Below, piece by piece: positions 29,001-63,354 of a stretch of 64,000 nt of DNA. The stretch is from Leucoraja erinacea (lineage: Eukaryota), in assembly GCF_028641065.1 (NCBI RefSeq), contig NC_073389.1, positions 62,001 to 126,000 on the forward strand, written 5' to 3'. Both the position numbers and the translations under genes were made by a program. Position 1 is the first letter of the stretch. Every line of letters starts with the position of its first letter. The notes beneath the pieces were generated by a model, which made no database searches, was not told the DNA's origin, and saw nothing but the letters and a program-made list of their open reading frames with translations.

Positions 29001-29399
29001 TCCCGGTCTCCCCCCACCCCAAAACTCTTCACGGGTTCCCTTTCCTCCCTACCACCCCCACCAATTCCCCTTTCGAACAAATGCCGGAGTAGAGGCCATC
29101 CTCAACCCTTCAAAAAGCGGGGCATTTCCAAGAGAGATCTGGCTGAATTTTCCTCTCTTTAATTTCCCCTGTCTTGTACCCAGTTCCCCCACCCCCTGAC
29201 TCGCCTCCCCTCACCTATTTGAAACCCATCGTTTGGGGTTGTCGGCCCTTCCCGTGCCCCTCTGGGATTCATCATTTTCTGCACCCCCTTCTCCACTTTA
29301 GCCTCCCCCCCCCTCCTTCATCTCCCTCCTCTCCTCCACCCTTTTTTTCTCTCACCCCCCCTCCCCACCTTAAAACACATGGTCCTCTAACCTCCCTCT

Positions 29400-32026: not shown

Positions 32027-32058
<32 letters not shown>

Positions 32059-36920: not shown

Positions 36921-37329
36921 CCACCCTTATGTGGAGCACCTTATTCCATAGACCACCCCCACACACCTATACCCCAACCTGCACCTCCCACCATTTAAAT
37001 CTGGCCATGTGCCCACCTACCATGACGCATCCGAGTGCTGTGTCCCAATATACCCGGTACAGCCCTCACCCCCTAGCTCAGGTACATGGACCCACACCCA
37101 CACGTGCTGTGGTACTCCAGCTCAGATCTGTGGAGGTGTACCCAGGAAGTACATGTGCAGGATCTAATTACCCCCCCCCCTTTACCCACCTCCCTCATCC
37201 AAATTCCCACCTGAGACTTGCCATACCTTTATTCGTTCCATTCCCCGCCATTGTCACAGCTATGCCCGAGGAAGGGACGTCCAAGTCCTATGCCCGCCTC
37301 AGCCCACCCTGAAGTCCGGACAAGGTGTA

Positions 37330-39060: not shown

Positions 39061-39079
39061 GCTAACTCCCTCTTAAATA

Positions 39080-42340: not shown

Positions 42341-42479
42341 AATGTTTCGGGTTGGGTCCTAATCATGTTCTCTAGAGATGCTGCCTGAGCCGCTGAGTTA
42401 CTTCATCATTTTTTCTTGTATACCAGCATCTTCAGTTCCTCGTTTCCACAAATGTACGAAGAGTTGTTTCACTGAACTA

Positions 42480-42604
42480 CCGTCCAATCTGCGGTCGATC
42501 TGACGCACAGCAGCGCAGAAAAACGCGCAGCGGTTGTGAATTCTGCAGAATGACCAGCGGCTCCGTGTGATCCGTGTCTCGGCACTTCCTTCACCAAAAT
42601 CAAA
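42480..42604 (+). promoter_or_regulatory. Candidate TATA-less promoter/5' UTR of gene B with ETS, RUNX and CCAAT motifs
   Basis: CpG-containing non-repeat segment just before the leader ATG: CCAAT at 42484-42488, TGCGGT (RUNX-type) at 42490-42495, CACTTCCT (ETS/PU.1-type) at 42583-42590. Short motif matches only. Confidence 0.4.
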
Positions 42605-42653
42605 ATGTCATCGTTTGCAAAATTCATCTTGGCACTCTGCCTCTTTCTCCCAG
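42605..42653 (+). CDS. Gene B exon 1: signal peptide (MSSFAKFILALCLFLP-G)
   Basis: ATG in good context (caaaATG), hydrophobic leader, consensus phase-1 donor CCAG|gtaagt. Confidence 0.85.
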
Positions 42654-43329
42654 GTAAGTCATTCATGTTCACCCTTGCCAACCTCTGTTCACGTTTTCTT
42701 CCTATAACTTGTTTCTATGGCTTTTGCATTAATGTTTGTTGCTTCTTTGCCGCCTTTTTTAAATGTCTTGTGTAATTTATGTTCAATTTGTTTTTGAATA
42801 TGTTTGTTTCAGTGTATGTGCATGTGATGCTGTTGCAAGCAAATTTTTAATTTAGTCTCAAAAGCAGAAATTGCAAATGCAGGTAAAATAAGTTTATGTC
42901 AGACAAGTTAACAAGACTAAGTTTAAGCGAAGGATTCCGACCCAAAACGTCACCCGTCATTTTTCTCCAGAGATGCTGCCTGACCCACTGAGTTACTCTT
43001 GCACCTTGTGTCTATCTTTAATATAAGCCACACAAGGAACTGTAGATTAATGTAAGTTTACATGAGGACGTTAACACAAATAAATCTAAGAGACACAAGA
43101 AGTGCAGATGCTGGAATCTTGAACAAAACACAGTACTGGAGTAACTCAGCGGTTCAGGCAGCATCTCTGGAGAACATGGACAGATGACGTTTCGCGTCGC
43201 GACCTTTCTTCAGATATGTTCGCCAGAGATTCTGCCAGCGCCGCTGCGTTTCTCCAGCACTTTGTGTCTGTCTTCGATATAGATCAGCATCTGCAGTTCC
43301 TTCCAACACAAGTGGTTACAGGTGAGAGA

Positions 43330-43361
<32 letters not shown>

Positions 43362-43447
43362 GCCTGGACCTCACTGTCCTTGTGCCCATGATAGTAAACT
43401 CGAGTTACTCGGAAGACGTCGTTAACTATGTTCACTTTCCGTGCCAG

Positions 43448-43783
43448 GGTCCGCTGTCGGTGTGAGGGTGAATCAGTCTCCTGCTGCTCTGACACGTCTC
43501 CGAGGACAGACAGCTACGTTCACCTGCTCCCTGCTTCCCGGAGAGGGGGAGGTAGTTTTAATGAGGCAATTCTGGTTTCGGGCGAAAGACAATCCGGAGC
43601 TCTGGGACAACAAGACCGAGAGTTTTCTGAAGACAGGCGGCCGACTGTCCGTGTCTCCGGGCTCGCTGGTCATTCGGGAGGTGACTGTGCACGATGCAGA
43701 CACTTACCATTGTGTGGTGCTGATAGATGATACATTCCCCTGGAAAACGTTTACAGGAAACGGAACCACATTACATATCCAAG
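43448..43783 (+). CDS. Gene B exon 2: germline-joined VJ-type IgV domain (NKp30/NCR3-, CD28-family-like)
   Basis: Acceptor ttcactttccgtgccag|GG and donor CAAG|gtaatt; 336 nt, phase 1/1. Translation GSAVGVRVNQSPAALTRLRGQTATFTCSLL...FWFR...GRLSVSPGSLVIREVTVHDADTYHCVVLIDDTFPWKTFTGNGTTLHIQ. Shows Q-S-P, B-strand Cys, WFR, D-x-x-x-Y-x-C and a J-like G-N-G-T-x-L in the same exon. Confidence 0.92.
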
Positions 43784-44467
43784 GTAATTAATATAGAACA
43801 TACAACAGGAACAGGCCCTTCAGCCCACTATGTTCGTGCGGCCCATGAGGCCAAGTTAAACATCCTTGAATATTCATGTGTCTATCCAAAAGTCTCTTAA
43901 ACTCTACGATCGTATCTGCCTCCACAGCCACTCCGAGATCTGATGCGATGGGGCTGGTGAATCACACGAACCCCAAGTTCCCTAAACCGAAACGCCGCCT
44001 GTCCATTCTCTCCACAGATGCGGCCTTAACCGCTGAGTTCCTCCAGCATTTTGTGTTTTGCTTAAGACTGCAGCGCCTGCAGTTCCACCTGCATTTCATC
44101 TCTCTCTATTAATGCTCATTTTCCGGCACAAACCAACCCAGTCTGACAAAGGGTCCCGAACTTAAACGTCATATATCCATGATTTCCAGAGATGCTGCCT
44201 GACCCGCTGAGTTACTCCAGCGCTTTGAGTCTAACTTTGGTAAAAATAAACCTCGCATCTACAGTTCCCCCTGTCTCCCTAATGATTCAAAATAGATAAT
44301 GAAAACAACCTCAACCTCGGTCGCAGTGTTTATATTCCCAACAGTTCTAGTGCTGGCATTTAATTCTCTTGATTTCCTTACAAGGAGGGAGTGTGGAAAC
44401 AAAAGCCTCTTTGTTTCTCTCAGTTTTCTCTAGTTTCCCTCTTGACATGACCGGCTGAAGGCGTCAA

Positions 44468-45195
44468 GGTGGGAAAAGGAGAAGTACAACGGGATCTGGG
44501 GGCCCTTGTTCATCAGTCTATGAAAGTAAGCATGCGGGTACAGCAGGCAGTGAAGAAAGCGATTGTTGGCCTTTATAACAAGAGGAATAGAATATGGGAG
44601 CAAAGAAGCCCTTCTGCAGTTGTACAGAATCCTAGTGAGACCACACCTGGAGTATTGTGTGCAGTTTTGGTCCCCTAATTTGAGGAAGGACATTCTTGCT
44701 ATTGAGGGAGTGCAGCGTTGGTTTACAAGGTTAATTCCCGGGATGGCGATATGCTGAGAGAATGGAGCGGCTGGGCTTGTACACTCTGGAGTTTAGAAGG
44801 ATGAGAGGGCATCTCATTGAAACATATAAGGGTTGTTAAGGGCTTGGACACGTTAGAGGCAGGAAACCTGTTCCCGATGTTGGGGGAGTCCAGAACCAAA
44901 GGGCCACAGTTTAAGAATAAGGAGCAAGCCATTTAGAACGTAGACGCGGAAACACTTTTTCTCACAGAGAGTGGTGAGTCTGTGGAATTATCTGCCCTCT
45001 GAGGGCGGTGGAGGCAGGTTCTCTGAATGCTTTCTAGTGAGAGCTAGATAGGGCTCTTAAAAATAGCGGAGTCAGGGGATATGGGGAGAAGGCAGGAACG
45101 GGGTACTGATTGGGGATGATCAGCTGTGATCACATTGAATGGCAGTGCTGGCTGGAAGGGCTAAATGGCCTACTCCTGCACCTATTGTCTATTGA
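44468..45195 (+). mobile_element. 5'-truncated CR1 in gene B intron 2
   Basis: LVRPHLEYCVQFWSP motif, CR1 3' UTR and ctattgt tail. Confidence 0.85.
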
Positions 45196-47027
45196 GTAAC
45201 AGCGGGTCAGGCAGCATATCTGGAGATCATAGATAGGTGACGTCTCAGTACGGGGCCCTGCTATAGACTGTGAGAGAGGTTATTACAGAACTTCTGTCGG
45301 AGAGAGGAGGATAACTTCTTCAAAGAAGGCATACCTTGAGGAATTTCACAGCGGAGCAGTCAAATGTAGACACTGGTTTATACCACTCAACGGGTCAGGC
45401 AGCACCTCTGTAGATCATGGATAGGTGACGTTTAGGGTCAGGGCCCTTCGTCAGCCTGGGTTAGTTTGTGCCTCAACGTGCACATTAATAGAGAGAAATA
45501 AAATGCAGGAAGGGAAATAAATAGAAGTGGAGACGGGGAACTGCAGGCGCTGGAGTCTTAAGCAAAACACAAAGTAACGGGGAACTCGGCGGTTAAGGCA
45601 GCATTCGTGGAGGTTTGGTGTTGGGGAACTTGGGACGTGTGTGAGGTCCCCAGCCCACCGTATCAGCGGACAGTGGGAGTGGTCGCACACATCCCTAACG
45701 CTTCATTGAAGGGAGGCAGCTACAATGCAAACGTGCGGCCGCTCTCCCATCGCCCACGGGCTGCGAGAGGGAGCCCGACCCGCTCAGACTCTGTTAAATA
45801 ATTCTGGCAACGTGAATCCATCTTCTGACCAATCTGGGCCGGACAGTACCAGTTGTAAAAGATAAGAAAGAAAATGCTGGAGCTACTCATCGGGTCGGTC
45901 CGTATCTGTGTGGGGGATAATTTACCGATTCACATTGAAGGCTTCCAGCCGAAACCCTGACTCTGAGACACAGGGAACTGGATGGGCTGGTTAAAACAAA
46001 GACGCAAAGTGCTGGAGTAATTCATCGAGTCAGGCAGCATCTCTGGAGAACATGGACCGTTATTCTCTTCTCACGAATCAGGCCTGTCCGGCTGAATATT
46101 TATATGTTCTGTTTTAGATGTCCATCATCGGCTTGGATTTAGTTTACCGTCTACATATTCACTTCCATTTCATGCATTAAAACACACAAAGTGCTGGAGG
46201 AACTCGGCGGGTCCGGCAGCATCTGAATGGACAGGCGACGATTCAGACCGAAGAATGGTCCAGATCCGAAACACCGTCTGTCCATTCCCCCCGCAGATGT
46301 ACCTGGCTCGCTGAGTTCCTCCAGCACTTTGTGTTGGACAATAGACAATAGGTGCAGGAGTGGGCCGTTTGGCCCTTCGAGCTAGCACCGCCATTCACTA
46401 TGATCATGGCTGAACATCCACAGTCAGTACCCCGTTCCTGCCTTCTCCTCATATCCATGGACTCCGCTATCTTTAAGAGTTCTATAACTCTCTCTTGAAA
46501 GCATCCAGAGAATTGGCCTCCACTGCCTTCTGAGGCAGAGAATTCCGCAGATTCACAACTCTCTGGGAGAAATGTTTTTCCTCATCTCCATTCTAAATAG
46601 CTTACTCCTTATTCTTAAAAATTCCAGCATCTCCAATTCCTTGTCTCCACTTCCATTTCATTCGCTTCCTGTATTTTTCTCTCTTATTGTGCATTTTGAG
46701 AGACAGACTGAAGAGATGTAGTCTGTAGATGTAACCCGACCCGAAACATCACACATCATCCATGAAGAGTTACTCCAGCACTTTGTGTCTCGTCAACTAT
46801 CTATGTTCTCCACAGATGCCGCCTGACCCTCTGAGTTACTCCAGTACTTGTGCCTTTCTTTGGTATAAACCAGCGTTTGCAGCTCCTCTTTATTCCGCTA
46901 ATAATCCATTGAATAACTTGGTTGCTCCTTAAGCAGGTGCACGGCGTGCCGTGTTATCATAGTTGCTCCATGCATGACTGAGAGCGACAGGAAGATTCAC
47001 AGCGTGTTATTTTCCTACTTTACGCAG

Positions 47028-47327
47028 CGAAGCCTGACATCTCCCTGACCCTGGATCCCGGGGTAAAAGGCGCAGAGACGCGGAGCCTGATTTGTGTGGC
47101 CGCCGGATTCTTCCCGAGGGAGCTGAACATGTCCTGGGCTGTCGTGGGCCAGTTGTCCTATGAAACAGAAGCGGGTCCGCTGAGGGAGAATGAGGATGGA
47201 AGCTTCAACGTGAGCTCCCGGCTGCGGCTCACCGGCCCTCGGCTAGAGGCGGGCATGGTCGTCACCTGCCTGGTTCAGCACCTCACCGGGACGGGCTCGG
47301 TGAGCGAACGTTTCCCTCCCATCCCAA
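47028..47327 (+). CDS. Gene B exon 3: C1-set Ig domain
   Basis: Acceptor ttttcctactttacgcag|CG and donor CCAA|gtaagt; 300 nt, phase 1/1. Translation AKPDISLTL...SLICVAAGFFPRELNMSW...ENEDGSFNVSSRLRL...VVTCLVQH.... Classic C1 motifs L-x-C-x-A-x-G-F-F-P, W, N-x-D-G-S-F and C-x-V-x-H. Confidence 0.92.
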
Positions 47328-50300
47328 GTAAGTGGCTTGAATGAACGTGGCAGCCAGCGTCCTCCAGTTACTGAATATACACAGAGTGCTGGAGTAACTC
47401 AGCGGCTCAGTTACTGCCGAGTTACTCCAACATGTTGTGTCTATCTGCGCTGTAAACTAGCATCTGCAGGTCCTTCCTACACATGCCCAAGGTTGCAAGG
47501 TTTAATAGTACATGTGTACAAATTTGTTAAACGTAGCCACAATGAACTGCTGATTCTAGATTACAAAAAAGACACAATGTGCTGAAGTAACTCAGTAGCG
47601 TCTAGCAGCATCTCTGGAGAACGTTGAACGCAATTCATAAACCTGATCAAAAGTTTATAAGATCACTCAATGTGTACAATATCAACTGCAAATATGTATT
47701 TAGACTTTCAGACTTTAGAGATACGCGGAAAAAGGCATTTCGGCCGATCAGCGATCACCTCATACACTGGGTAGGCAAAATAAATGCTGGAGGAACTCAG
47801 CGGGTGAGGCCGCATCTATGTAGAGAAGGATATGCGACGTTTCAGGTCGAAACGCTTCTTCTTAAACACATCATACACTAACACTATCCTGCGCAATGGG
47901 GACAATTTACAATTTTACCGAAGCCAATTAACCTACAAACTCGTAAGTCTTTGGAGTGTGGGAGGAAACCGGAGAACCCGGAAAAAAAACCCACGCAGGT
48001 CACGGGAAGAACGTACAGACTCCGCACATCCAACACCCGGAGTCAGGATTGAACCCGCGTCTACTGCGCTGTAAGGCAGCAACTCAAGTACAGTTCATCT
48101 GTGCATCGATATATATATATATATGTGGATATGTATATGGATATGTATATGGATGGGAAGGGAATGGAGGGTTATGGTCTGAGCGCAGGTATATGGGACT
48201 AGGGGAGATTATGTGTTCGGCATGGACTAGAAGGGTCGAGATGACCTGTTTCCGTGCTGTAATTGTTATATGGTTATATATATATCTTTTTTTTGAGTTG
48301 CTGTCTTATATATTATATATATGTATGTTTATGCATCGATGATATCAGCTCAAGATATATATATATATATATCTTTCTTCATTATTATTTGAAACATTTA
48401 CCGTTACAATACAGCGTAAGTGCTTTATCATATCAATATCAATATATTAATCATATAACAATTACAGCACGGAAACAGCCCATCTCGGCCCTACAAGTCC
48501 GTGCCGAACAACTTTTTATCCTTAGCCCACCTGCCTGCAGTCATACCATAACCCTCCATTCCCTTCTCATCCATATGCCTATCCAATTTATTTTTAAATG
48601 ATACCAACGAACCTGCCTCCACCACTTCCACTGGAAGTTCATTCCACACCGCTACCACTCTCTGAGTAAAGAAGTTCCCCCTCATGTTACCCCTAAACTT
48701 CTGTCCCTTAATTCTGAAGCCATGTCCTCTTGTTTGAATCTTCCCTATTCTCAAAGGGAAAAGCTGGTCCACATTAACTCTGTCTATCCCTCTCATCATT
48801 TTAAAATGATGACATTATTATATACATCTTGTACCCTGTATTTTAACGGTAAATGTCTCAAATAATAATGGAAGTTGAAGAAAGATGTATAAAATTGATA
48901 CTCGAGAAACTGCAGATGCTGGAATCTTGAGCAACACACAAAGAGCTGGAGGAACTCAGTATCTGTGGAGGGAATGGACATGCGTTGTTTCGGGTCGGGA
49001 CCCTTAGCTCACAGATGCTGCCTGACCCACTGAGTTCCCCCAGCACTTTGTGTTTTGCTCAAGATTCCAGCATCTGCGGTTCCTTGTGTCTGCAAATTTC
49101 ATATTGTTTAATTAATTTAATTTATTCTGCGTTCATCGACGCACAGATGAAATCTCGACAAAAGGGGTTTAGGTGAATATATAAACTATAAACAAACGCA
49201 GCGGGTCAAGCAGCATCTGTGGAGGGAATGAACAGACGACGTTTCAGACTGACGAAGGTTCCCGATCCAAACATCATCAGTCCTTTCCCTCCACAGATGC
49301 TGCCTGACCCGCTGAGTACCTCCAACACGTTGTGTTTTGCTCAAGATTCCAGCATCTGCAGTTCCTTGTATCTCCATAAACTATACACAATACTTAATTA
49401 TTTCCACTTCAATTTCGCTCCCGGTGCCCCACCGGTTATAGTGTTGCTGTTAAATCAACTTGGTTTCCTTACAAGGACAGTGGAATATGGTGGAACGGTG
49501 GGAAAATTGCTGGAGTAACTCAGCGGGTCAGGCAGCATCTCTAGAGAACATGGATAGATGATGTTTCAGGTCAGGACCCTTCTTCAGACTGAATGTTGTA
49601 TTATGAAATATTGTAATGTATACGACTCCTATGAAGGCAGCGTTGTGATGTTGCTGAATTTTCGAATTATACAAAGAGAGATAGGAACGTTGATTGTGGA
49701 TAGAATATATGAACAAGAAAATAGATGTGAAGTCTAGCATAATGTGAGGGGGAAAGCAAAATTGTATATTTTGATGAGAAAACAAAAGCTTTTTGCTGTA
49801 TCTCAGTCCACGTAACAATAAACTAAACTAAATTAAAACAAAAAAGTTAAAAAGAGTTCTGACACAGGTTTTGACCTGAAACGATGAATCTGATTTTCTC
49901 TTCACAAATGCTCATGATCTTAGGAGCATTTAAAGTTTTTATTGAGGGTGGTGTGAGCTGGATCATGCTGCCAGTGGTGGTGGGGGAGGTAGGTGCGATT
50001 TGTGGTGTTAAAGGTTAGAGGTTTTGATAGGCACATGGAATTGCAGGGAATGGAGGGATATGGATGATATGCAAACAGAGAATAGTTTAACTTGGCATCA
50101 TGTTCTTCATGGAAATTCAGGGCTGAAGGATCTGTTCCTGAATTGGTATATGTTCTACTTTAGAGTAGTTTACCTGTTTTCATTGGTCTATCTTTGGTAT
50201 AAACCAGCATCTGCATTTCGTTCCTACATTCTCTATCTATCTATCTGTCTGAAAAAGGGTTGCGACCCGAAACGTCACCTACAGTATTTCTTTTCTTTAG

Positions 50301-50749
50301 AGATGCTGACTGAACCGCTGAGTTACTACAGCACTTTGTGTCTATCTTCTGATGTTTATTTACTTTTTAAATTATTGCCACTTTTCCTCCAGAAATATCA
50401 CCCTGGAAAAAATTCCCCTGCAACCACAAGAGATGCAACACCTGTCCCTATACCATTTCCCTCGACTCCGTCCCGGGATCCCGGTAGTCCTTTCAGGTTA
50501 GGCAGAGGTTCACTTGCATCTCCAACCTCACCTCCTGTATCCGTTGTTCAAGATGTGGACTCTTATATATCAGCGAGACCAAATGTAGACTGGGCAATCA
50601 TTTCGCTGAACACCTTCTCTCAGTCCGCCTGGCCCTACCTGATCTCCCAGTTGCTAAACACATTTAATTCTCCTTCTCATTCCCGCTCTAACCTTTCTGT
50701 TCTAGGCCTCCTCCATTATCAAAGTGAGGTTAAATGGAAATTGGAGGAA

Positions 50750-53700
50750 TGGCCCTATTTATTCTCGGTGATGGAAACATTTCAACTGGGTGAGACGTTT
50801 TGCACATGGGTTAAGCTTTTATACACTAACCCAACAACTAGAATAATGACAAATCAAATGTTATCAACAAAATTATATTTATCTAAAGGTTTCAGACAAG
50901 GATGTCCGTTATCTCCATTATTATTCGCCCTTGCTATTGAACCACTAGCAGAAAGTGTTCGAGCACATCCAGAAATATATGGGTATAATACAAAAAATAG
51001 TTAATAAAATCTCTCTATATGCAGACGATGTATTACTTTATATTACACACCCAGAAATCAGCATTCCAAACTTGTTAAATCTTATAACTTAATTTGGTTT
51101 ATTTTCAGGTATAGAATTAATTGGAATAAAAGTGAGATTATGCCTAACGGAACCTAATTTATACATATTGCAACAATCACCTTTATAGTCAATGAAAAAT
51201 TTAAATACCTAGGAATTTATGTGACCAAGAAATATACTTATTTATTTAAATCAAATTTCATGCCTTTACTTAATAAATTGCATAAGAATAATCAATATTG
51301 GAAAACACTTCTCATTTCAATGCTCGGTAGAATTAATGCTATAAAAATTATTTTCCTTCCGCAATTGCTATACCTTTTTCAATCAATTTCTATATATCTC
51401 CCCAAAAAAATCTTTAAAAAAGTTGACTCTATAGTGACATGTTTTATTTGTAATTATAAGAACCATAGAATAAGCAAAAAACACTTATGCAAATCCAAAA
51501 CCAAAGGAGGATTAGTTTTACCAATATTTTTATTTTACTTTTGGGCAGTCAATGTCAAAAATATGAATTTTTGGTTGGAAGATATGGATCAACAACCAGA
51601 CTGGTTAAAGATGGAAAAGGAAGACTGTTTGCCTTTTGAAATTGGTCCGATTCTGTTAGCTCCCACAAAATTGAATTTAAAAATCTATAGTGAAAACCCT
51701 ATAATATATAGTGGTATTCGAATTTGGAAACAACCAAAAAAGACATTAAAATTGGATAATTTATCACTTTCTCTCCCCATTGCAAATAATCCTTTATTTA
51801 AACCCTCAGTGTTGGATAAAGGGTTTGTACAATGGAAAAATCATGGAATTAAAAATATGGGACATCTTTATAGAAATTGTATTTTTCCCTCGTTTCAGGA
51901 GTTACAACAGAATTACGGATTGCATTCAAATAAATCTTTTTGATATTTACAACTTAAAGATTATGTTAAATCACATACACGAGAATACAGAACCAGAGAA
52001 CCAGAGATTCTGGATGAATGTTTGAATAAACACGCTAACACAGTCAAATTAATATCTCACATTTATAATACTTTTATAGACAGTGATAATCCGTCGACGG
52101 AATTATACAGCCAAGCATGGGAAAAGGAATTAGCTCAACCTATACCGAAAGATATTTGGGACGAAAGCCTACAACATATACACCAATGTTCGTTAAATGC
52201 CATACATTTTTTAATATAATTTAAAGCACTACATAGACTGCATTATTCTAAAACAAATTTAAATAGAATGTTTCCTAATATCTCTCCTATCTGTGATAAA
52301 TTTCAATCCCACGTGGCTAATTCAACCCATACTTTTGTAAACTGTAGTAAAATTAAAAATTACTGGATGGATATTTTTTAAATAATCTCTGTAGTCGTCA
52401 ATATCCAAATGGATCCCAACCCTAAATTAATAATGGTTACACAAAAAAGCTGGAAAAACTCAGCAGGTGCAGCAGCATCTATGAAGCGAAGGAAAAAGGC
52501 AAAGTTTCGGGCCGAAACCCTTCTTCAGACTGATCGGGGGCGGGGGTGGGCGGGAACAAGAAAGGAAAAAGGAGGAGGAGCCCGAAGGCTGGGGGATGGG
52601 AGGAGACAGCAGGGGGACTGAGGAAGGGGAGGAGACAGCAAGGACTAACAAAATTGGGAGAATTCGATGTTCATGCCCCCAGGATGCAGACTCCCCAAAC
52701 GGAATATGAGGTGCTGTTCCTCCAATTTCCGGTGCTGCTCGCTGTGGCCATGGAGGAGACCCAGGACAGAGAGGTCGGAGATGGAGTGGGAGGGGGAGTT
52801 GAAGTGCTGAGCCACCGGGAGGTCAGCTTGGTTATTGCGGACCGAGCGGAGGTGTTCGGCGAAACGATCGCCCAACCTCCGCTTGGTCTCACCGATATAG
52901 ATCTGCTGACATCTAGAGCAGCGGACGCAATAGATGAGGTTGGAAGAGATGCAGGTAAACCTCTGTCGCACCTGGACCGATTGCTTGGGTCCTTGAACGG
53001 AGTCGAGGGGGGAGGTAAAGGGACAAGTGTTGCATCTCTTGCGGTTGCAAGGGAAAGTGCCCGGGGAGGGGGTGGTACGAGAGGGAAGGGAAGAATTGAC
53101 AAGGGAGTTATGGAAGGAGCGCTCTTTGCGGAAGGCAGATATGGGGGGAGATGGGAAGATGTGGCGAGTGGTGGGGTCACGTTGGAGGTGGCGAAACTGA
53201 CGGAGGATTACTTTTTGTATGTGACGGCTGGTGGGGTGAAAGGTGAGGACTAGGGGGACTCGGCCCTTGTTGCGAGTGGGGGGATGGGGAGAGAGAGCAG
53301 TGTTGCGGGGTATGGAAGAGACTCTGGTGCAAGCCTCATTTATGGTGGCTAAATTATGGCTAAATTAATAATATTGGGCATATCAGAACAATATCTAAAC
53401 CTCACATTAAGCCAAATAAATTTCCTTGATTACAGTATAAGAATTGGGAAAATATTGATATCAAAATTTTGGAAAAACCTAACAACCCCCACAATCAAGA
53501 TGTGGATTATGGAGATGTCGGAGACCTTACATTTGGAAAAAATTAGATTTGTCTTAATTGACAAACCAGAATTATTTACTAGCATATGGTCTCCATTTAT
53601 AGATTATTTGAAGGGGTAGATCGGACTAGTGAGGAGGCCGGACTGAAGCCTGAACCCAGGACTAGATAAATAGTTATGTTCTCTGGCCCCAAGTTGTATT

Positions 53701-53936
53701 ATTGGTAGTTTATCCTATTTTTCTAATTTCTTTCTTTCTTTCTTTTTCCTATCTATAAATATAAATAAATAATTAGAGGCAATGTTAACATGTAACCGAT
53801 AAAGGAGGATCCCAGCTACTTTGGTAACTGGCTCCCTGGAAACCTGGATAGTTAATATGTAACCGTTAAACAAAGTCTGTACTGGTTTGGATTATGATAT
53901 GCAGATGCCTCTAATAAAAATGTATTTAAAAAAAAA
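50750..53936 (+). mobile_element. 5'-truncated L1-clade LINE with poly(A) tail and 14-bp TSD
   Basis: RQGCPLSPLLFALAIEPLA, LYADD, GRINAIK, GGL, and a decayed C-terminal zinc knuckle. AATAAA plus an A tail. TSD GGAAATTGGAGGAA at 50736-50749 and 53937-53950. Confidence 0.92.
52435..53359 (-). mobile_element. Young Penelope-like insertion (GIY-YIG endonuclease + 3' repeat) with 13-bp TSD inside the L1
   Basis: ORF 52645..52971 reads NLIYCVRCSRCQQIYIGETKRRLGDRFAEHLRSV. TSD CTAAATTAATAAT at 52422-52434 and 53360-53372. The L1 frame rejoins as PNPKLII|LGISE. Confidence 0.9.
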
Positions 53937-55465
53937 GGAAATTGGAGGAACAACATCTCATATTACACTTGGGCAGCTTACAACCCAGGGGTATGAATAT
54001 TGATTTGTCTAACTCCAAGTAACCCTGGAATTCCCTCTCTCTCTCCACCCCTCCCCATGCAAGTCACAACCATTTTTTGTTCTCACCTAGCTACAGCTAA
54101 CAATGACCTGTTTCCTTTATCATCAATACTTTTTTGCATATCTTTCATTCAGTTGTTCTATATCTCTCGACATCATTGTCGATATCTCTTGTTTCCCTTC
54201 CCCTTGACTTTCAGTCTGAAGAAGTCTTGACTCAAAACGTCACCCATTCCTTCTCTCCAGAGATGCTGCCTGTCCCACTGAGTTACTGCAGCATTTTGTG
54301 TCTATCTTCGATTTGAACCAGCATCTGCAGTTCCTTCCTATGAAATTCTGCTCATCTCTCTATCATCTATTTTTTTTCCCCTGTTCTCACGATCGGTCCT
54401 TGACCTGTTTCTTTAACTTTGTTTCTCTTTCCACATTTTCTGCCTGACCTGCTGCATAGTTCCAGCATTTTCTTTCTTTTCTTTAACTTTGCCAGTAAGC
54501 AGATATAGCAAATCAATGTGAAAGCTAGATAGTGGAAATGTCAAGGACTAGAGGACATAGCTTCAAGGTGAGAGAGGCAAAGTTTAAAGGAGACGTGCGG
54601 GACAAGTTGTTTTACATAGAGGGTGGTGAGTGCCTGGAACATGTTGCTAGTAGTGGTTGTGGAGGCTGATATGGTAGTGGCATTAAAGAGGTGTTTAGAT
54701 AGGCATATGGATGTGCAGGGAATGGAGGGATATGATTCACGTGCAGGCAGAGAAGATTGGTTTAACTTGGCTCCATGTTTGTCACGGACATTGCAAACTG
54801 AAGGGCCTTTACTATGTTCTAAACTCTATCAGGTTGGCAGATTCTGTACACAACACATTCCAAGACAGACCATTACACAAAGGATTCACTGTTGATTTTG
54901 CATAATGATTTCTCCTTGTTCTTTGGTTTATAAGGGGCAAAGTTTAACAAAGATGTGCAGAGGGTGAGTTTTTGTACACAGGGTGGTGGGTGCCTGGAAT
55001 GCACTGCCAGTGGTGGAGGCAGATATGATAGTGGTGTTTAAGAGGCTTTTAGAAAGCAGTTATGCAGCTGATTTTGCAAAGAACCCTAGTGGTTTGTGAA
55101 ATGTTTCACTTCTCATAAACAGCTCGGTAATTAACAACACTTATCGAGTTCATACACAAGATTACAAGTTGTTCAGCCACAGCCATACAATGATGCCTGT
55201 CTTGCGCTTGTTGTGCTTCCTGTGCTTCTTGGTGGGAGATTGGTGGAAACAGGGCCGCGACGTGAACGCTCTTTCCTTGACCCCATTCACAACACGTTAT
55301 CTTGCGGTCATTTACAACACAAGGATCCAAACTTTACCCCAGTAACAGTAAACTTAGTGAATAGTAAGAATGTTAATCTATGAATAGAATAATGTAGGTT
55401 TTCTCCTCTGAAAGGCCTGACTTATTTCTTTAAGGATAGATATTTGTAGAACTAGAATATTAAGC

Positions 55466-57610
55466 AAAATAACCAAACGGACGCAACGCCGAAAAGCCAA
55501 ATAACGAACATGATGTCGCCGGGGGGCAGGACTTGTCAGCGATTGGTCCAGACCCCCGTGTCCATTACATCACTGGCCAGAGGAGACGGGAAGGTGGGGG
55601 TCATTTTCCCACACCGGGGCTGGAGGGTGACTGGGCATTGTGAACCCGAGCACCAAGGTGTAAGGGGGCGAAGGAGCGCATCCCTCAAGGCAGCCCCCAC
55701 CCTCCCCCCCAGGGTCGGCAGTGCACACACATACACGGGGCCAGGTGGAGCAGAGTTGGGGACAGTCTGGTCCCTCCGCCCACCCAGATTCACTGACCGC
55801 AATGCACCACCACCAGACCCCGACACCCACACTGTGGTGGTTCACCCTCCCCGAACCCCGGCCCACACACGGGGTAATTCACACCACCGACACCCACACC
55901 GGGTGATTCACCCCCACCCCAGGCCACGGGGACAGACGGCCTGGGGCGCTGGCAGTCAAAGTAAATCACTTTTAAAACATGGTGGGGGACACAAATTCCG
56001 TGGCGGGCCGATGACAAGTGTGCATGACAATGAACAATTTTATCTCCTCCCATACCCCCCCCCCCCCCTTGACAACAATAAACACGTTTTAATTATTTAA
56101 ACACAGTAATACCGCCTGGTTGCCTGTGTAACACACACACGCCGGGTTGACTGCAATCATTGAAACAGGGCGGACCACGTGAAGGTTGCAATCTTCCACC
56201 CTATGTGTAACACACAAAGCACCAGATAATCTGATTTTTTCAGTTTATTTGCAGTTCATGTGTTTTTTTTAACTTTGCGCATTTAACAGTCATTTTCACA
56301 GCGGTGTCGAGTGCATCGTACTTTTTCCCCCCGCAGATGATACATTACTCTCACAACACATAACTTACCTCTATTACCCCTCTACATAAAAACAAAATGA
56401 CAATGCCCCTTCAAGGTCTACTAATCCACCCATAGCTTCAATTGCAGGTACAGCTGAAGGGATTTGGCGCTCGGAACAATTACTGCATTAGAAGATCATC
56501 TGAGCATCTTGAAATCAATCTCATGAGCACGAGTGAAAGATAGCCGAGCGATGCGGTATCGATCTGCCCACATCACACAGAGTGGAAAAGAATGAAATGG
56601 ACTTTGCAAATTATTCACCCTCATGAGATGAACACTTTCACCCTCATGAGATTGATTTCAAGATGCTCAGATGATCTTCTAATGCGCTCATTTATGTAGA
56701 GGGGTAACAGAGGTGAGGTATGTGATTCAAGAGTAATGTATCGTCTGCGGGGGGGGGAGAGTACGATTTACTCGACACCGCTGTGAAAATAGCTGTTAAA
56801 TGCACAAAGTTCGAAAACACAAATGAACTGCAAATAAATTACAAATAATCTGGTGTTTTATGCGTGGGAGCTTGTTGTGTGCGTTACGCAGGCAACCAGA
56901 TGGTATTACTGTGTTTAAACAATAAATAAAATGTGCTTCTTGTTGTCAAGGGAAAGGGGGAGTGGGGTAGTGGGAGGAGAGATAAAATTGTTCGGTGTGG
57001 GTGTCGGGGGGGGGGGTGAATCACCCTGGTCTGGGGGCCGAGGTCTGGTGGGCGGGGCATCGTGGTCAGTGACTCTGGGAGGGCAGAGGGACCAGACTGT
57101 CCCCAACTCTGCTGCAGCTGACGGGGACGTTGCCGGGTTTTCGTCCCCCTGTGTCCGCTCCCGTTTCACCCGGGCCCGTGTGTGTGTGCGCTGCCGACCC
57201 ACAGCCTGTCACAATGTGGCCGCACAGGGGAGACGAGACGAGACGGTGGGCGGCCGTGGCCGGACAGCACTGACCCGGGGGGGGGGGGGGGGGGGGTCTG
57301 TCCCGAGGGATGCGCTCCTTCGGCTGCTTACACTTTGGTGCTCATGTTCCAAACGCCCAGTCACCCCCTAGCTCCGGGCGATCTTATGTGAGGAAAATGA
57401 CCCCCACTCTCCCGTCTCACCCAGCCAGTGATGTGATGGACGCGGGGGTCTGGACCAATCGCTGACAAGTCCCGCCCATTATTTTTTGGCGTTCAGTGAG
57501 TTGGCTTTTCAGCTTTTCGGTTATTTGGTTTTTAGTGTCCCACCGTTTTGGTTATTCAGCTTTTCGGCGTTGCGTCCGTTCGATTAGTTGGCTTTTCGGC
57601 ATCGTTTACG
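55466..57610. mobile_element. About 2.1-kb foldback (long inverted-repeat) non-autonomous element
   Basis: Arms pair as reverse complements: about 55535-55800 with 57050-57480, 56080-56390 with 56690-56940, and 56490-56530 with 56640-56685. Subterminal short repeats (ttttcggc/gccgaaaa) are present. Confidence 0.8.
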
Positions 57611-57854
57611 TTGGGTGGGAAAGTGTGATAACATAGAATTGGTTTGAGCAGGTGAGCGATGGCCAGTGTGGACTCGGTGGGCAGAAGCACCAGGTTCCAT
57701 TCTGTTTCTTTAAACAAAATGAAACTAAACTAAATACATGTTTAATGTTGTATGTAACAGTGCATTTATATTAACGTAACCTGCATTAGTCATGATTATA
57801 TTTGCTATTCATTGGAGCATTGTTTTGATTCACATTTCTATTGTGATTTTCAAG

Positions 57855-57956
57855 GATCCTCCGAGTATTATTTCATTCTACTGAGTCTGATCCTAATAGT
57901 ACCAATATGCGTCTGGATTGTGTATAATTACCACAGTAAATTGAAGAAAGGAAAAG
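57855..57956 (+). CDS. Gene B exon 4: transmembrane exon
   Basis: Acceptor gattttcaag|GA and donor AAAG|gtaatg; 102 nt, phase 1/1. Translation RSSEYYFILLSLILIVPICVWIVYNYHSKLKKGK: about 20 uncharged hydrophobic residues followed by basic stop-transfer residues. Confidence 0.82.
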
Positions 57957-58382
57957 GTAATGTATACATTGTACATCTTATTTTGTAATTTAACTAACAA
58001 CTGAGCATGTAAAAGTGAATATTGTATTTAGTTCCCGGTGAAATTAAAATAATTTAAACAAAATGAGGGCGACACAGTGTTGCAGCTTGTAGAGCTGTTG
58101 CCTCACAGCGGGTTCAATCCTGACTGGGTGCTGACCATGTGGAGTTTGCACGTTCTCCCTGTGACCTCATGGGTTTTTTCAAAATGCTCCGGTTTCCTCT
58201 CATGTTTGGGTTTGTAGGTTAATTGGCCTCTGTAAATTGCCCCTAGTGTGTAGGGAGTGGATGAGAAAGTGGGATAACATAGAACTAGCGTGATCGATGG
58301 TCGGCATAGACTCAGTGGGCTGAATGGCCTGTTTCTGTCCTGTACTTCTGAAGTACACTAAATCTTCATGATATTTTTATAG

Positions 58383-58450
58383 AATCATCTGTCCATGACG
58401 CAACTGTTGATATTCAAAGCATGAGAAAACAAAAAAACTCAGTAAATGAG
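58383..58450 (+). CDS. Gene B exon 5: cytoplasmic exon (ESSVHDATVDIQSMRKQKNSVNE)
   Basis: Acceptor atatttttatag|AA and consensus donor GAG|gtgagt; 68 nt. Phase 1/0 is exactly what is needed to join exon 4 to the terminal exon in frame. Confidence 0.75.
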
Positions 58451-58736
58451 GTGAGTAATTTAGTTTGATATTTACCCTTATGTTGCATGCACGGTGTTCT
58501 AATGTACACTGAGGTATTGTCAGCTTATATGAACAAATTCATCAGCACTATTGGATGTAATGGACTAAGAACACAAGCCATTCTGCGGCACGTTGGCGCA
58601 GTGGTAGAGTTGCTGCCTTACAGCACCAGAGACCCAGGTTTGATCCTGACTACAGTTGCTGTCGGTACGGAGTTTGTATGTTTTCCCTGTGACCTTGTGG
58701 GTTTTCACCGGGTTCTGGCTGCGCATTCTCCAAAGG

Positions 58737-59381
58737 ATTACTGTAACGCGTTCTATTTTGGAGTTGCTCGTTCTTCACTGGCTCGTCTCCAGTTGGCTCA
58801 GAATGCTGCTGCTCGCCTTTTAACAGGGACTCGAAAGAGGGAGCACATATCGCCAATTCTGGCCTCCCTACACTGGCTCCCGGTGCACTTTCGGGTTCAT
58901 TTTAAGATACTGTTATTTGTTTTTAAATCTCTGAATGGGCTCGCCCCGCCTTACCTCTCTGAGCTGCTCCACCCATACGCTCCTGCCCGGTCCCTCAGGT
59001 CAGCTGGTCAGCTGCTCCTGGAGGTACCGAGGTCTAGTCGGAGGCTCAGAGGGGATAGAGCCTTCTCTGTTGCTGCTCCGGCACTCTGGAACACCCTGCC
59101 GTTGCACATCAGACAGGCCCCCTCACTGTCCATCTTCAAATCCAGTGTGAAAACGCATTTGTACTCCCTGGCTTTTGACCATGCCTGAGGCTTTGCTTCT
59201 GCTTGTGGTGTTTTTGATGTTTCTTTATTTTACATGTCTTTTCCTACTATTTCTTTTGATTGTTATTTTTGGTGTGTATTAACTTTTTTGTCAATGATTA
59301 GTGATGTACAGCACTTTGTTGCAGCTATGTTTGTTTTTAAAGTGCTCTATAAATAAAATTATTATTATTATTATTATTATT
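58737..59381 (+). mobile_element. 5'-truncated young L2 3' end with (ATT)n tail inside a SINE
   Basis: Uninterrupted DYCN...LQLAQNAAARLL...LHWLPV...RAFSVAAPALWN, then AATAAA + (ATT)n; AAAGG is duplicated at the flanks. Confidence 0.88.
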
Positions 59382-61910
59382 AAAGGCGTACAGGTTAATT
59401 GGCTTCTGTAAAAATGATCGCTTGTGTGTAGGATAGTGCTAGTGCAGGGGTTATTTGCTGGTTGGCGCAGACTCGGTGGGCCGGAGGGCCTGTTTCTCTA
59501 ATACATCAGCAGTTCCTTGTGTCAGCAAACCCGAATGGTCACTTTGTACTTTTCCGATTGAGAGAATTTTTCAATGCATTTAACTTGGTTGCCGTTTGCT
59601 TCCATCAGCTGGAACTAAACTGCTAACAAAGTGAGTTCCATATTCCAAAGCACACTTCCTCTTCAAGGAGGCCTTGTGATCAACTGCATACCAGTCATTG
59701 GACATTGCTGTGTAATGAGTTTCGTTGTTAATAACCAGTTGAAGATGTTGCTGCGAATTTGCGTTGGATTTCATTCTTTTCAACTAAATCGCCTATGCGT
59801 AAAACGACCTCAAGCGCCTGGTTTACTCAATATAGTGAATGCAGGGTCTTTTCCACGATAGGGAAGTCTGGCTGCATTATTCAAGCACTTTGTCTTTTTT
59901 TTCTAAGCCACCATCTGCAGTTTCTTGCGTATTTATTAAAGTGCGGTTCTGTTACTTTTTTATTCTTCTACTCTGTGAAGACTTTAAGCTTGGAGTATAA
60001 TTCCAGGGTCTCATTGTCCTCAATGTTATTTCTCACTTCTTCAAGTGTATATCCTAGCGTTGATGAAATGACATATCTTGACCAAGTCTGATTAGACTTT
60101 AGAGATACAGCGTGGAAACAGGACATTTGGCCCACCGAGTCCGCACCGACCAGCAATCACCTCTTACACTAACGATATCCTACACACTGGGGACATTTTA
60201 CAAATTTACCAAAGCCAATTAACCTACAAACCTGTATGTCTTTGGAGTGTGGGAGGAAACTGGAGCATCTAGAGATCCCACGCGATCAAGGGGAGAACAT
60301 ATAAACTTTGTACAGACAGCACCTGTAATCGGGATTAAAACCAGGTCTCTGCCGCTGTGAGGCAGCAACTCTACCGCTGTGCCAATGTGCCCCCTAATCA
60401 TGCACCTTTTTGCACATGACATTAATTGCACTCCTCAGACTGACTTTCACCTCTGTATCATTTTATACACACAAAGCCTGATAGCGCGTGACAAACAAAA
60501 CAGCTGTTAATCTTGTCCTTTTAGAGTTGGTCAGATACAGGTCACAATGGCAGATTATAGCAGGCACAGATATTCCCTACACACTGGGGGCAATTTACAG
60601 AAGACCACAAACCCTTTGGGAGGAAATTAGAGCATGGATGAATTAATTAACTCTGCCCGATATCTTTCCCTGGACTCCCGATACTGAATGTGCAGCAACT
60701 GAAAGTGATGGCGGTGGGTTTTCTCCTTAAACAGCTCAGTGAGTGGTTGCATGAGTTTTTGCAGTTGGAGGTCACTTCAGTAAAATATGAATTGCCAGCG
60801 CAAAGTTCTCTGATTCTAGCAATATTCCAACGTCATATCACACTGTGCCCTGCCAACAACAATCCCATCAATACCAACCTGCCTGAGATCATTTGTTGCC
60901 GGCCCTGATTTGTCCCAGTCTTTGCTTACTTCCAGTTCCTCCCCGCTACTACCCCTCTCCCCTCCCCCAGTCTGAAGAAGGGTCCCGACCCAAAACATCA
61001 CCTATTCACCACACAGACATGTGGCTCATTGACTTTCTCCAGCCAGGGTGTGTTTTTGATGTTATTGGTTGACTTTTTGAGGCAGCGCCTCCTGCAGATC
61101 CCTTCGATGTTGGGGCGGTCTGTTCCTGTGATGGACTAGGCAGTGTCCACCTCTCTTTGTAACCTGCTTCATTCCTGGGAGATGTTGACAATGATATCAG
61201 TGAAACAGATATTGCCCACAAGTGTCACATGCCCATCAATCACATGGACACACACATCCACACTTTAGCTTTTGCCCATTTGGTGTTTACTAATCAAATT
61301 CATTACTGATCTTCACATGACTTTTCAACATAAATCAGGAACAGAGTATTTATACCTCATTAGATTCAGCGAAAAATAAAATGACCATAAGATCATCAGA
61401 CATAGTAGCAGAATTAGGTCATTCAGCCCATCGAGTCTGCTCCGATATTCACTCATGGCTGATCTAATTTTCCCTCTCAACCAATTATCCTGCCTTCTCC
61501 CCGTAATCTTTGACACCCATACTAATCAAGAATCTATCATTCTCCTCATTAAAGATACCCAATGTCTTGGCCCCCACCACTGTCTGTGCTAATGAATTCC
61601 ACAGATCCACCACCAACTGGCAAAATAAATCCTCTCATCTCCATTCTATTGTTATCCTCAATTTTCTAAAGTTCTAAAACTCCCCCTCTTCGCCAATTCT
61701 AAAATGAACAATAAAATGTTTATAACAATAAGGTGGAATGTATGCAGAGAAGGTTTACAATGATGTTGCCAGGACCTGAGGGCCTGAGCTGTAGGGAGAG
61801 GTTGGGTGGGCTAAGACACTATTCCTGGAGCACAGGAGCATAAGTGGCGACATTATAGATGTGTATAAAATGATGATGGGAATAGATGAGTCTTTTACCC
61901 AGAGAAGGGA

Positions 61911-61911
<1 letters not shown>

Positions 61912-61953
<42 letters not shown>

Positions 61954-62605
61954 AAATCAGCCCGCCTGCAGTACGGATCCCTTCCTGCCTTTCGATTCGT
62001 TGACGGATTCGTAGAGAGAGTACAGAGGAGATTTACTAGAATGTTGCCTGGGTTTCAACAACTAAGTTACAGAGATAGGTTGAATAAGTTAGGTCTTTAT
62101 TCTCTGGAGCGCAGAAGGTTAAGGGGGGACTTGATAGCGGTATTATACTTGATAGCGGTATTTAAAATGATGAGAGGGATAGACAGAGTGGACAAGCTTT
62201 TCCCTTTGAGAATAGGGAAGATTCAAACAAGAGGACATGACTTCAGAATTAAGGGACAGAAGTTTAAGGGTAACATGAGGGGGAACTTCTTTACTCAGAG
62301 AGTGGTAGCGGTGTGGAATGAGCTTCCAGTAGAAGTGGTGGCGGCATGTTCGTTGGTATCATTTAAAAATAAATTGGATAGGCATATGGATGAGAAGAGA
62401 ATGGAGGGTTATGGTATGAGTGCAGGCAGGTGGGACTAAGGGAAAAAAAGTTGTTCGGCACGGACTTGTAGGGCCGAGATGGCCTGTTTCCCTGCTGTAA
62501 TTGTTATATGGTTATATGGTTTGAAGTGGTATGAAACTGCACTTGAATTTGGTGGCCTTGCACTCTGCTTGAAATGGAATTTCAAGGAATAGCCACTTAG
62601 TCTAG
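61912..62605 (+). mobile_element. Short Helitron-like insertion carrying a different CR1 fragment
   Basis: A|TC(TATC)n start, shared cccttcctgcctttcgattcgtt motif, and end CACTTAGT-CTAG|T. Inserted between A and T with no TSD, in a CR1 remnant that rejoins on removal. Confidence 0.7.
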
Positions 62606-62985
62606 TTGAGAAATAGAAGGCATATGTTTAATGTGAGAGGGAAAAACCTGAGGGGCAACTTTATCAATCAGAGGGTGGTGGGTATATGGAACGAACCACC
62701 TGAGGAGGTAGTTGAGGCAGGAAATATAACACCATTTAAAATATATTTGGACAGGTGCATGGACAGGTGCGTGGACGGGTGCATGGACGGGTGCATGGAC
62801 AGGAAAAGTTTACAGGGACGAGAGCCAACCACGGGCAAATGGAACATGTTTAGATGGGGCATCTTAGTCGGCATAGACCAGTTGGGCCGATGGGTCTGTT
62901 TCCATGCTGTATAACTCTATGATATGAATATAACACAACTAAATACAAGTGAGCCTTATTGTTACTTGTTATTTTTCTGTTACAG

Positions 62986-63132
62986 GATAATGTTTCAATA
63001 AACAATGAAAATCTGCATTATGCGCCTGTTTATTTCAACAAGGGACAGCGAAGACAGGAATTGAGATGGACCGAGCAATCCCAAGAAACAGAATATGCCG
63101 TCTTAAAGGTCAAAGATAAAAATAATTTATGA
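62986..63132 (+). CDS. Gene B exon 6: terminal cytoplasmic exon with ITIM and ITSM-like motif
   Basis: Acceptor ttatttttctgttacag|GAT, phase 0. Translation DNVSINNENLHYAPVYFNKGQRRQELRWTEQSQETEYAVLKVKDKNNL-TGA. LHYAPV fits the ITIM consensus and TEYAVL is ITSM-like. The six exons sum to 1002 nt, an open 333-aa frame. Confidence 0.85.
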   Translation, partial: DNVSINNENLHYAPVYFNKGQRRQELRWTEQSQETEYAVLKVKDKNNL

Positions 63133-63151
63133 AGAGCCCATAACCCAGAGT

Positions 63152-63157
63152 AATAAA
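63152..63157 (+). terminator. Candidate polyadenylation signal of gene B
   Basis: AATAAA about 20 nt after the TGA stop; motif match only. Confidence 0.35.
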
Positions 63158-63354
63158 TTGTCCCTCTTCAACGAGACCACAAACTGATAATTATCATAAA
63201 ACCACACACTCTTCTCGCAAACAATATACGTAGAATATAAGAAACAGAAACTAGAGGCTGTAGCACAGCTTCTGAAACTTAATTCTCTATTCAATTACTT
63301 TCCTTAAGCTCGATCTGACTCGGCCTTGATCGCCTTCTCAGAGTTCCAAATGTT

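Follow-up and report, generated by a model that had tools for sequence, protein, structure and literature searches.

Genes in which the variable (V) domain and its joining (J) strand are encoded together in the germline are known from several receptor families, i.e., CD79, NITR, SIRP, CD8, NKp30 and PRARP, according to the available portions of PMC11599192 and PMC10751288. Two non-rearranging elasmobranch genes combine such a VJ segment with C1-type domains, namely UrIg, which is secreted and has three constant (C) domains, and UrIg2, which has nine to eleven (available sections of PMC12227049). PRARP comprises non-rearranging VJ receptors with a cytoplasmic immunoreceptor tyrosine-based inhibitory motif (ITIM); these receptors occur in bony fish, amphibians, reptiles and birds and have been linked to the origin of antigen receptors (available part of PMC10751288). 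Germline-joined immunoglobulin (Ig) genes of skates and sharks are also on record (PMC2192082, PMC2193156). In the portions available of PMC12227049, PMC11599192 and PMC10751288, no family is described by name that joins VJ and C1 to a tail with an ITIM and an immunoreceptor tyrosine-based switch motif (ITSM). Here we describe a gene of this type at positions 42605-63132 (+ strand) of a 64-kb stretch of Leucoraja erinacea DNA (hereafter, the window).

This skate gene belongs to a widespread family of SIRP-like, apparently paired VJ-C1 receptors that is visible in databases but unnamed and mislabelled there. We consider it likely that the gene is intact and encodes a 333-amino-acid (aa) type I membrane receptor, which would be the inhibitory member of such a SIRP-like paired family, with the signalling proposed below and a tail shortened in skates.

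Structure of the skate gene

Searches with the skate gene were run exon by exon, with single exons as queries, and domain trees were likewise built from single exons. Direct reading of the sequence yields six exons (E1 to E6) with consensus splice sites and phases 1-1-1-1-0, which sum to 1002 nucleotides (nt) and join into an open frame of 333 aa (Table 1). E1 supplies the start codon and the greater part of the signal peptide (MSSFAKFILALCLFLP plus the first base of a Gly codon); together with the first residues of E2 it forms a split leader that is interrupted by a phase-1 intron, an arrangement typical of antigen-receptor genes. The E2 product is a V-set domain (Pfam, E = 1.7e-7) with the Cys pair FTC...YHC, the framework region 2 sequence WFRAKDNP and, within the same exon, the J-like strand FTGNGTTLHIQ. 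The E3 product belongs to the C1 set (PF07654, E = 6.8e-13, 49.2 bits as compared to a gathering cutoff of 21); it reads AKPDISL...LICVAAGFFPRELNMSW...VTCLVQH...FPPIP and shows the canonical Cys...Trp...Cys-x-V-x-H pattern. The E4 peptide, RSSEYYFILLSLILIVPICVWIVYNYHSKLKKGK, comprises a short stalk, a transmembrane (TM) helix with no charged residue (YYFILLSLILIVPICVWIVYNY) and a basic stop-transfer sequence. E6 carries an ITIM (LHYAPV) and an ITSM (TEYAVL), i.e., the sequence motifs of inhibitory receptors, with their tyrosines 25 residues apart. These motifs fit the patterns (S/I/V/L)xYxx(I/V/L) and TxYxx(V/I/L), respectively. A polyA-like hexamer (AATAAA) is located at 63152, 20 nt past the stop codon.

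Strict and tolerant scans of the 42-48 kb region found no recombination signal sequence (RSS; heptamer, spacer of 12 or 23, nonamer), and a single loose RSS-like match was present in the whole window. The V exon thus has the features of a germline VJ, i.e., V and GxGTxL strand in one exon, a split leader and no RSS. Because it is unsplit and lacks an RSS, diversity would come from gene copies and alleles and not from rearrangement. No further V-like or C1-like exon was found in the introns or elsewhere in the window. In these respects the first-pass annotation, which had proposed a complete non-rearranging leader-VJ-C1-TM gene from the sequence, proved accurate: the exons, splice sites, phases and frame, the in-exon J-like strand, the C1 domain, the uncharged TM segment, the ITIM and ITSM-like motif and the lack of an RSS around the V exon were each recovered.

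Four of the five exon joins are backed by independent gene models. The protein XP_055500207.1 (L. erinacea RefSeq, 171 aa) matches E3 (residues 34-99, beginning at an internal Met), E4, E5 and E6 with 100% identity; this identity fixes three joins, and the model splices the C1 exon straight to the TM exon (E4). The V-C1 join (E2/E3) is fixed by XP_032889365.1 (Amblyraja radiata RefSeq, 237 aa), which begins within V and reads ...GNGTTLHIQ/AKPDISL... across this junction. The stop after KDKNNL is common to the window and to the Amblyraja model and, as it is shared by two skate genera, is therefore not an assembly slip. All six exons are also colinear with Pristis pectinata XP_051870356 (V 19-125, C1 127-221, TM 229-259, E5 262-283, E6 285-334), with identities of 64% for V, 61% for C1, 61% for TM, 59% for E5 and 60% for E6. 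The E1/E2 join is placed solely by splice consensus and by the leaders of orthologues, which align with E1 (MGAVILKFCLFVLGP..., MPPPRSLIYKLWLLLLGP...). Overall, the six-exon model is more complete than the public RefSeq annotation, and both skate RefSeq proteins can be extended to the full 333-aa form.

Table 1. Positions of the exons of the VJ-C1 receptor gene and of other features in the window (a slash marks an exon border)
Feature	Position	Strand	Length	Borders, phase and remarks	Basis
E1, signal-peptide exon	42605-42653	+	49 nt	ATG ... CCAG/GTAAGT; phase 1 donor	sequence
E2, leader end and single-exon VJ	43448-43783	+	336 nt	AG/ ... /GTAATT; phase 1 in and out	
E3, C1-set Ig domain	47028-47327	+	300 nt	acceptor ...TTTACGCAG/ (CAG), donor GTAAGT; phase 1 in and out	
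E4, stalk, TM and stop-transfer	57855-57956	+	102 nt	acceptor ...TTTTCAAG/ (AAG), donor GTAATG	
E5, cytoplasmic exon (ESSVHDATVDIQSMRKQKNSVNE)	58383-58450	+	68 nt	acceptor TTTTTATAG, donor GTGAGT; phase 1 in, 0 out	
E6, coding part, ITIM and ITSM	62986-63132	+	147 nt	acceptor ...TCTGTTACAG/; ends KDKNNL, TGA 63130-63132	
Frameshifted distal-tail remnants, 3' untranslated region	63107-63230	+			tblastn of orthologue tails against the window end
B7/butyrophilin-type gene, V-set exon	~3790-4140	+		E = 1.9e-9	
B7/butyrophilin-type gene, butyrophilin-type Ig-C exon	~8401-8670	+		PF22705, E = 1.8e-14	
C/A-rich low-complexity DNA	~25500-40300		~12 kb	GC skew down to -0.99	

Numerous open frames that resemble pieces of reverse transcriptase or of other retroelements fill the introns, among them intron 3 with its 10.5 kb (e.g., 44469-44760, 48491-48800, 50024-51950, 52645-53180, 58487-59190 and 61861-62440), and a short intron repeat (...FFTQRVV..WNELP...) is present repeatedly on both strands. 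Upstream, on the same strand, the window contains a B7/butyrophilin-type gene (Table 1), which could be a ligand-type gene adjoining a receptor gene. The two genes are separated by extremely C/A-rich low-complexity DNA, which translates as HTHTP/PPSL-type repeats and includes runs of N at 32130-32411, 32536-32700 and 33093-33235 that represent assembly gaps or masking.

The family in elasmobranchs and amphibians

Relatives of the skate gene were sought with HMMER, for which the V exon served as query against 1.84 billion representative proteins, and by word-indexed searches with a full-length orthologue and a family alignment. Full-length predicted orthologues with the leader-VJ-C1-TM-tail layout were found in at least 15 elasmobranch species, among rays in the genera Pristis, Hypanus, Mobula (two species), Hemitrygon and Narcine, and among sharks in Scyliorhinus, Mustelus, Heptranchias, Heterodontus, Stegostoma, Rhincodon, Hemiscyllium, Chiloscyllium and Cetorhinus. 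A further sequence, UniParc UPI0003D81EA5, is probably from a chimaera. Two amphibian proteins with the same layout and approx. 26-28% identity, i.e., XP_029433897 of the caecilian Rhinatrema and A0A8C5P6H9 of the frog Leptobrachium (the latter with one extra V domain), both retain the two tail tyrosines; a homologue search with the caecilian protein returned only the query itself. In the exon trees, the C1 exon of the window falls within a batoid clade (SH-aLRT, i.e., Shimodaira-Hasegawa-like approximate likelihood ratio test, 100; terminal branch 0.55) and the V exon within an elasmobranch clade (SH-aLRT 87), on a long terminal branch of 0.63. These results show that the skate gene is the batoid representative of an elasmobranch-wide receptor family, which is probably also present in a chimaera and has relatives in amphibians.

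The suggestion of the first-pass annotation that the gene may represent an undescribed chondrichthyan family thus fails on two counts: a truncated RefSeq model of the same gene exists alongside the full-length predictions from other elasmobranchs, and the caecilian and frog proteins, with the same architecture and both conserved tail tyrosines, take the layout beyond cartilaginous fish. Its remark that no mammalian gene matches, on the other hand, stands, as no close mammalian counterpart appeared among the named matches of the V-exon search. The automatic names of the orthologues are inconsistent, ranging over SIRP-beta-1-like, SHPS-1-like, Ig kappa light chain-like, T-cell receptor (TCR) beta chain MC.7.G5-like, Ig heavy chain Mem5-like and uncharacterized. 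No match in the family searches bears the name "NCR3", and ten further V-search matches with names provided no NCR3 or SIRP names of use.

The combination of one V and one C1 domain, likewise put forward at first pass, describes the skate gene correctly but is not a fixed trait of the family, as the orthologues of Hypanus, Mobula and Hemitrygon are V-C1-C1. The two C1 domains of these ray proteins are each other's closest relatives in the tree and therefore stem from a recent tandem duplication.

Some species possess, in addition, short-tailed twins in which the ectodomain is near-identical and the TM segment contains an arginine (Pristis XP_051869794, Hemitrygon XP_072901538 and Mobula XP_062906795). 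Because of these twins, the family looks like a paired one, the arginine-bearing TM being the sequence signature of an activating partner to an inhibitory form. NCBI names the twins TCR beta-like or Ig heavy chain Mem5-like, and one Hemitrygon protein (XP_072901537) pairs V-C1-C1 with an arginine TM.

A DNA data set with approx. 96% identity to the skate gene comes from a relative, which could be a sister species or a paralogue. The V exon of this relative is open, with approx. 10 nonsynonymous as compared to 4 synonymous differences and a net in-frame deletion of 6 nt that makes the loop resembling complementarity-determining region 3 two codons shorter. Among the differences listed for its C1 exon, one is nonsynonymous and one synonymous. 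This small sample fits a ligand-binding V domain that evolves faster than the supporting C1 domain.

Both tyrosines of E6 are invariant in a 10-sequence family alignment. Shark orthologues carry four tyrosine motifs, i.e., LHYA(S/P)V, TEYAVL, VxYSxV and TxYASL. In Pristis, Hypanus and Mobula the distal motif pair lacks tyrosines while the frame still runs on, and the skate protein ends directly after the ITSM. Past that point, the window holds two remnants that match the shark tail ...YEEPVxYSxV...CPTS..RQTANY..TxYASLK: IYEEPITQS (63107-63151), in a different frame from the coding sequence, and CPSSTRPQTDNYHKTTHSSRKQYT (63159-63230), in the third frame. These remnants indicate that the two-motif skate tail is a secondary truncation of an ancestral four-tyrosine tail. 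The ancestral arrangement is most like that of SIRP-alpha (ITYADL / TEYASI / LTYADL / SEYASV). The tail had been called PD-1-like at first pass; the ITIM and ITSM are indeed present, but the tail as a whole is a skate-lineage truncation of one that resembles the tail of SIRP-alpha. PD-1 and BTLA share with the skate gene an ITIM followed by a TEYAx(I/L) ITSM. The 25-residue spacing of the tyrosines is that of PD-1 and BTLA and suits the reach of the tandem Src homology 2 (SH2) domains of SHP-1/2. PD-1 and BTLA differ in having a single Ig domain and no C1; the CD28/PD-1 family is characterized by a lone V on a stalk, whereas the skate protein has a C1-set domain. As the skate tail is a truncated four-tyrosine tail, the likeness to PD-1 and BTLA is convergent or due to constraint from the SHP tandem SH2 domains.

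Relationship to SIRP, NKp30 and rearranging receptors

When the family profile was scored on single C1 domains, SIRP-alpha domain 3 (d3) obtained 54.6 bits, C-kappa 53.5, IgG CH3 43.7 and UrIg2 C2 and C3 37-38; on V plus C1, Ig kappa obtained 79.8 bits, SIRP-alpha d1-d2 75.4 and UrIg2 70.4. As these scores are nearly equal, sequence leaves it undecided whether the family is SIRP-like or antigen-receptor-like. The V exon alone, compared to PDB, matched VNAR, V-kappa and then NKp30 (22 bits), in that order, with SIRP outside the best 60. Foldseek, queried with a model of the catshark orthologue, matched TCR-beta and Fab light chains alike (approx. 1e-13 and a template-modelling score of approx. 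0.3 in every case) and discriminates nothing.

Four features lean toward SIRP, namely the C1 score, the junction of V and C, the paired twins and the tail with four tyrosines. SIRP-alpha, -beta and -gamma (PDB 2wng, 4i2x) share with the family a J-like G strand with a C1-set domain directly after it, across the junction ...GxGTxLxV(Q/R)/AKP..., as well as an inhibitory form, whose tail bears several ITIM-type tyrosines, and twins that combine a short tail with a basic residue in the TM segment. The automatic RefSeq names also point to SIRP, as does the best single C1 score. The skate gene differs from SIRP in having one C1 domain as compared to two (a single C1 exon, no further Ig exon, and a C1 joined directly to TM in XP_055500207.1) and two tail tyrosines as compared to four, the number seen in its shark orthologues. 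The C1 pairs of rays are recent tandem duplicates, sequence similarity of the family to SIRP is no higher than to Ig kappa, and no SIRP synteny is visible in the window.

It is possible, though we find it doubtful, that the gene is simply an elasmobranch orthologue of SIRP-alpha (PTPNS1/SHPS-1) inside the SIRP family, in which the second C1 was lost or never gained. The NCBI pipeline calls most orthologues SIRP-beta-1-like or SHPS-1-like, d3 is the top single C1 match, and SIRP-alpha d1-d2 aligned end to end, including the V-C junction. The shark tail (ITIM / TEYAx(L/I) / ITIM / xxYASL) resembles that of SIRP-alpha, paired arginine-TM twins exist in Pristis, Hemitrygon and Mobula, and some rays have V-C1-C1. 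However, Ig kappa scores alike, the difference between C-kappa and d3 being within noise and its V plus C score being the highest, and the best 60 matches of the single-sequence V search contain VNAR, V-kappa and NKp30 yet no SIRP. Moreover, the second C1 of rays is a recent duplicate within their own lineage and not the d2/d3 pair of SIRP, and the visible neighbour is a B7/butyrophilin-like gene, not a recognised gene of the human SIRP cluster.

The TGNGT strand and the upstream B7/butyrophilin-type gene mean that a connection to NCR3 (NKp30) may exist. Like the skate gene, NKp30 has a V domain of the germline VJ type whose G strand reads TGNGTxL, and the skate gene has a B7-family neighbour. 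A stronger form of this idea, i.e., that the gene belongs to a divergent elasmobranch NCR3 family with an extra C1 that co-evolves with neighbouring B7H6-like ligands, seems unlikely to us. NKp30 (6yjp) aligns across the whole V exon (22.3 bits, E = 1e-3) and, partial contactin alignments (26.9 bits) aside, is the first V domain in the PDB list that is neither antibody nor VNAR; the J-like motif TGNGTxL matches that of human NKp30, and the B7/butyrophilin-type V and Ig-C exons lie upstream on the same strand. Flajnik in 2012 reportedly found that NKp30 and B7H6 copy numbers co-vary, and Kinlein in 2021 is said to have described eight divergent shark NCR3 subtypes. NKp30 is by definition, however, a lone, activating VJ domain without a C domain and with an arginine in its TM segment, whereas the skate gene has a C1 exon spliced to an uncharged TM; the similarity in V is weak, and no match bears the NCR3 name.

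Among other non-rearranging genes, UrIg and UrIg2 (PDB 9dmx) resemble the skate gene in being elasmobranch genes with a single-exon VJ, a split leader and C1-type domains next to it. In total score, UrIg2 heads the PDB matches of the C1 exon and also those of the family profile because of its three C domains; its per-domain scores (37-38 bits) are below those of SIRP or C-kappa. UrIg and UrIg2 combine VJ with at least three C1-type domains as compared to the one C1 of the skate gene, and neither ITIM nor ITSM is reported for them in the available sections of PMC12227049. PRARP, compared by description only, shares with the skate gene a non-rearranging VJ and a cytoplasmic ITIM. Fu et al. (2019, J Immunol) reportedly described its second domain as C2 and the bird forms as V only.

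A different concern is that the skate copy could be decaying, with production of the complete receptor having ceased and expression limited to a truncated or V-less product, if there is any. The leader is missing from both skate RefSeq models, as is V in whole or in large part, the distal tail was lost by frameshifts, and the terminal branches of the window exons are long (0.63 for V, 0.55 for C1). Truncated Gnomon models are, however, frequent for weakly expressed immune genes, and the frame is open through all six exons, whose splice sites match the consensus and which include the canonical Cys and Trp residues. The relative with approx. 96% identity keeps the V frame despite 14 substitutions and an indel, and the KDKNNL stop in two skate genera indicates that the shortened tail, with both invariant tyrosines, has persisted. 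We thus regard decay as very unlikely.

Finally, the fused VJ could be secondary, the product of germline joining by RAG in a once-rearranging Ig light chain or TCR gene that later gained TM and tail; it would then be uninformative on the pre-RAG ancestor. Germline-joined Ig genes are known from skates and sharks (PMC2192082, PMC2193156), with skate Ig light chain clusters as a precedent, the best V plus C1 profile score belongs to an Ig kappa chain (79.8 bits) and the best Foldseek matches are TCR-beta and Fab light chains. However, sharks, rays, the probable chimaera sequence and amphibians all have this fused VJ-C1-TM-tail gene, so that any joining would predate the split of cartilaginous and bony vertebrates. 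In independent models C1 continues into TM and cytoplasmic exons, in contrast to a germline-joined skate Ig light chain cluster, which would consist of leader-VJ and C exons alone, be secreted and show high identity to an IgL isotype; identity of V or C to any Ig or TCR, including the PDB matches, is only approx. 25-30%. We regard this reading as highly improbable.

Proposed signalling and antigen-receptor origins

In the reading that we favour, an inhibitory receptor of a SIRP-like paired family, the V domain would bind a cell-surface ligand; a candidate, proposed solely for its adjacency, is the B7/butyrophilin-type protein encoded approx. 30-40 kb upstream. A Src-family kinase would then phosphorylate both tail tyrosines, and the doubly phosphorylated ITIM-ITSM pair may recruit the tandem SH2 domains of SHP-1/SHP-2 and dampen activation of the leukocyte that carries the receptor. 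The arginine-TM twins would signal oppositely via an adaptor with an immunoreceptor tyrosine-based activation motif, making up a paired inhibitory/activating family like SIRP-alpha/beta.

Several observations weigh against this reading. No arginine-TM twin was found within the 64-kb window. Both skate RefSeq models are truncated at the N-terminus, one starting in C1 and the other in V, and the leader-to-V join and expression of the full 333 aa are therefore inferred. The only sequencing run found is DNA of the relative with approx. 96% identity, whose contigs (42400-48300) cross the exon-intron borders and hence carry no splice evidence. An AlphaFold2 model built from the 10-sequence alignment, with the catshark orthologue first, was poor (mean predicted local distance difference test 50, predicted template-modelling score 0.34). 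The ligand, SHP recruitment and cell type, moreover, are drawn from knowledge of the motifs.

We also considered whether the family could be an independent lineage of membrane-bound single-chain VJ-C1 receptors, distinct from SIRP, NCR3 and germline-joined Ig/TCR genes, that is older than the two rounds of whole-genome duplication, persists in cartilaginous fish as well as in amphibians and disappeared from amniotes. We rate this as improbable; SIRP-alpha and Ig kappa obtain much the same score with the family profile, which bears on such a pre-RAG relic without deciding the matter. If it were true, the skate gene would be the living gene closest in layout to the hypothetical non-rearranging chain that was split by the RAG transposon, and its ligand might be the neighbouring B7-type protein.

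For the inhibitory SIRP-like receptor that we favour, the tail would offer a clean natural case of reduction to a minimal ITIM-ITSM pair, with the distal tyrosines lost stepwise in batoids and the tail truncated in skates. Attempts to reconstruct the origin of antibodies and T-cell receptors draw on non-rearranging VJ-C1 genes, among which UrIg2 was put forward in 2025 as a candidate relative of the gene that RAG invaded. The family described here has a simpler layout that resembles a TCR chain (VJ, one C1, TM) and is conserved from sharks to amphibians, with SIRP-like tails and putative activating twins. As databases label its members SIRP, Ig kappa, TCR beta or Ig heavy chain, it merits a single name and a proper phylogeny.

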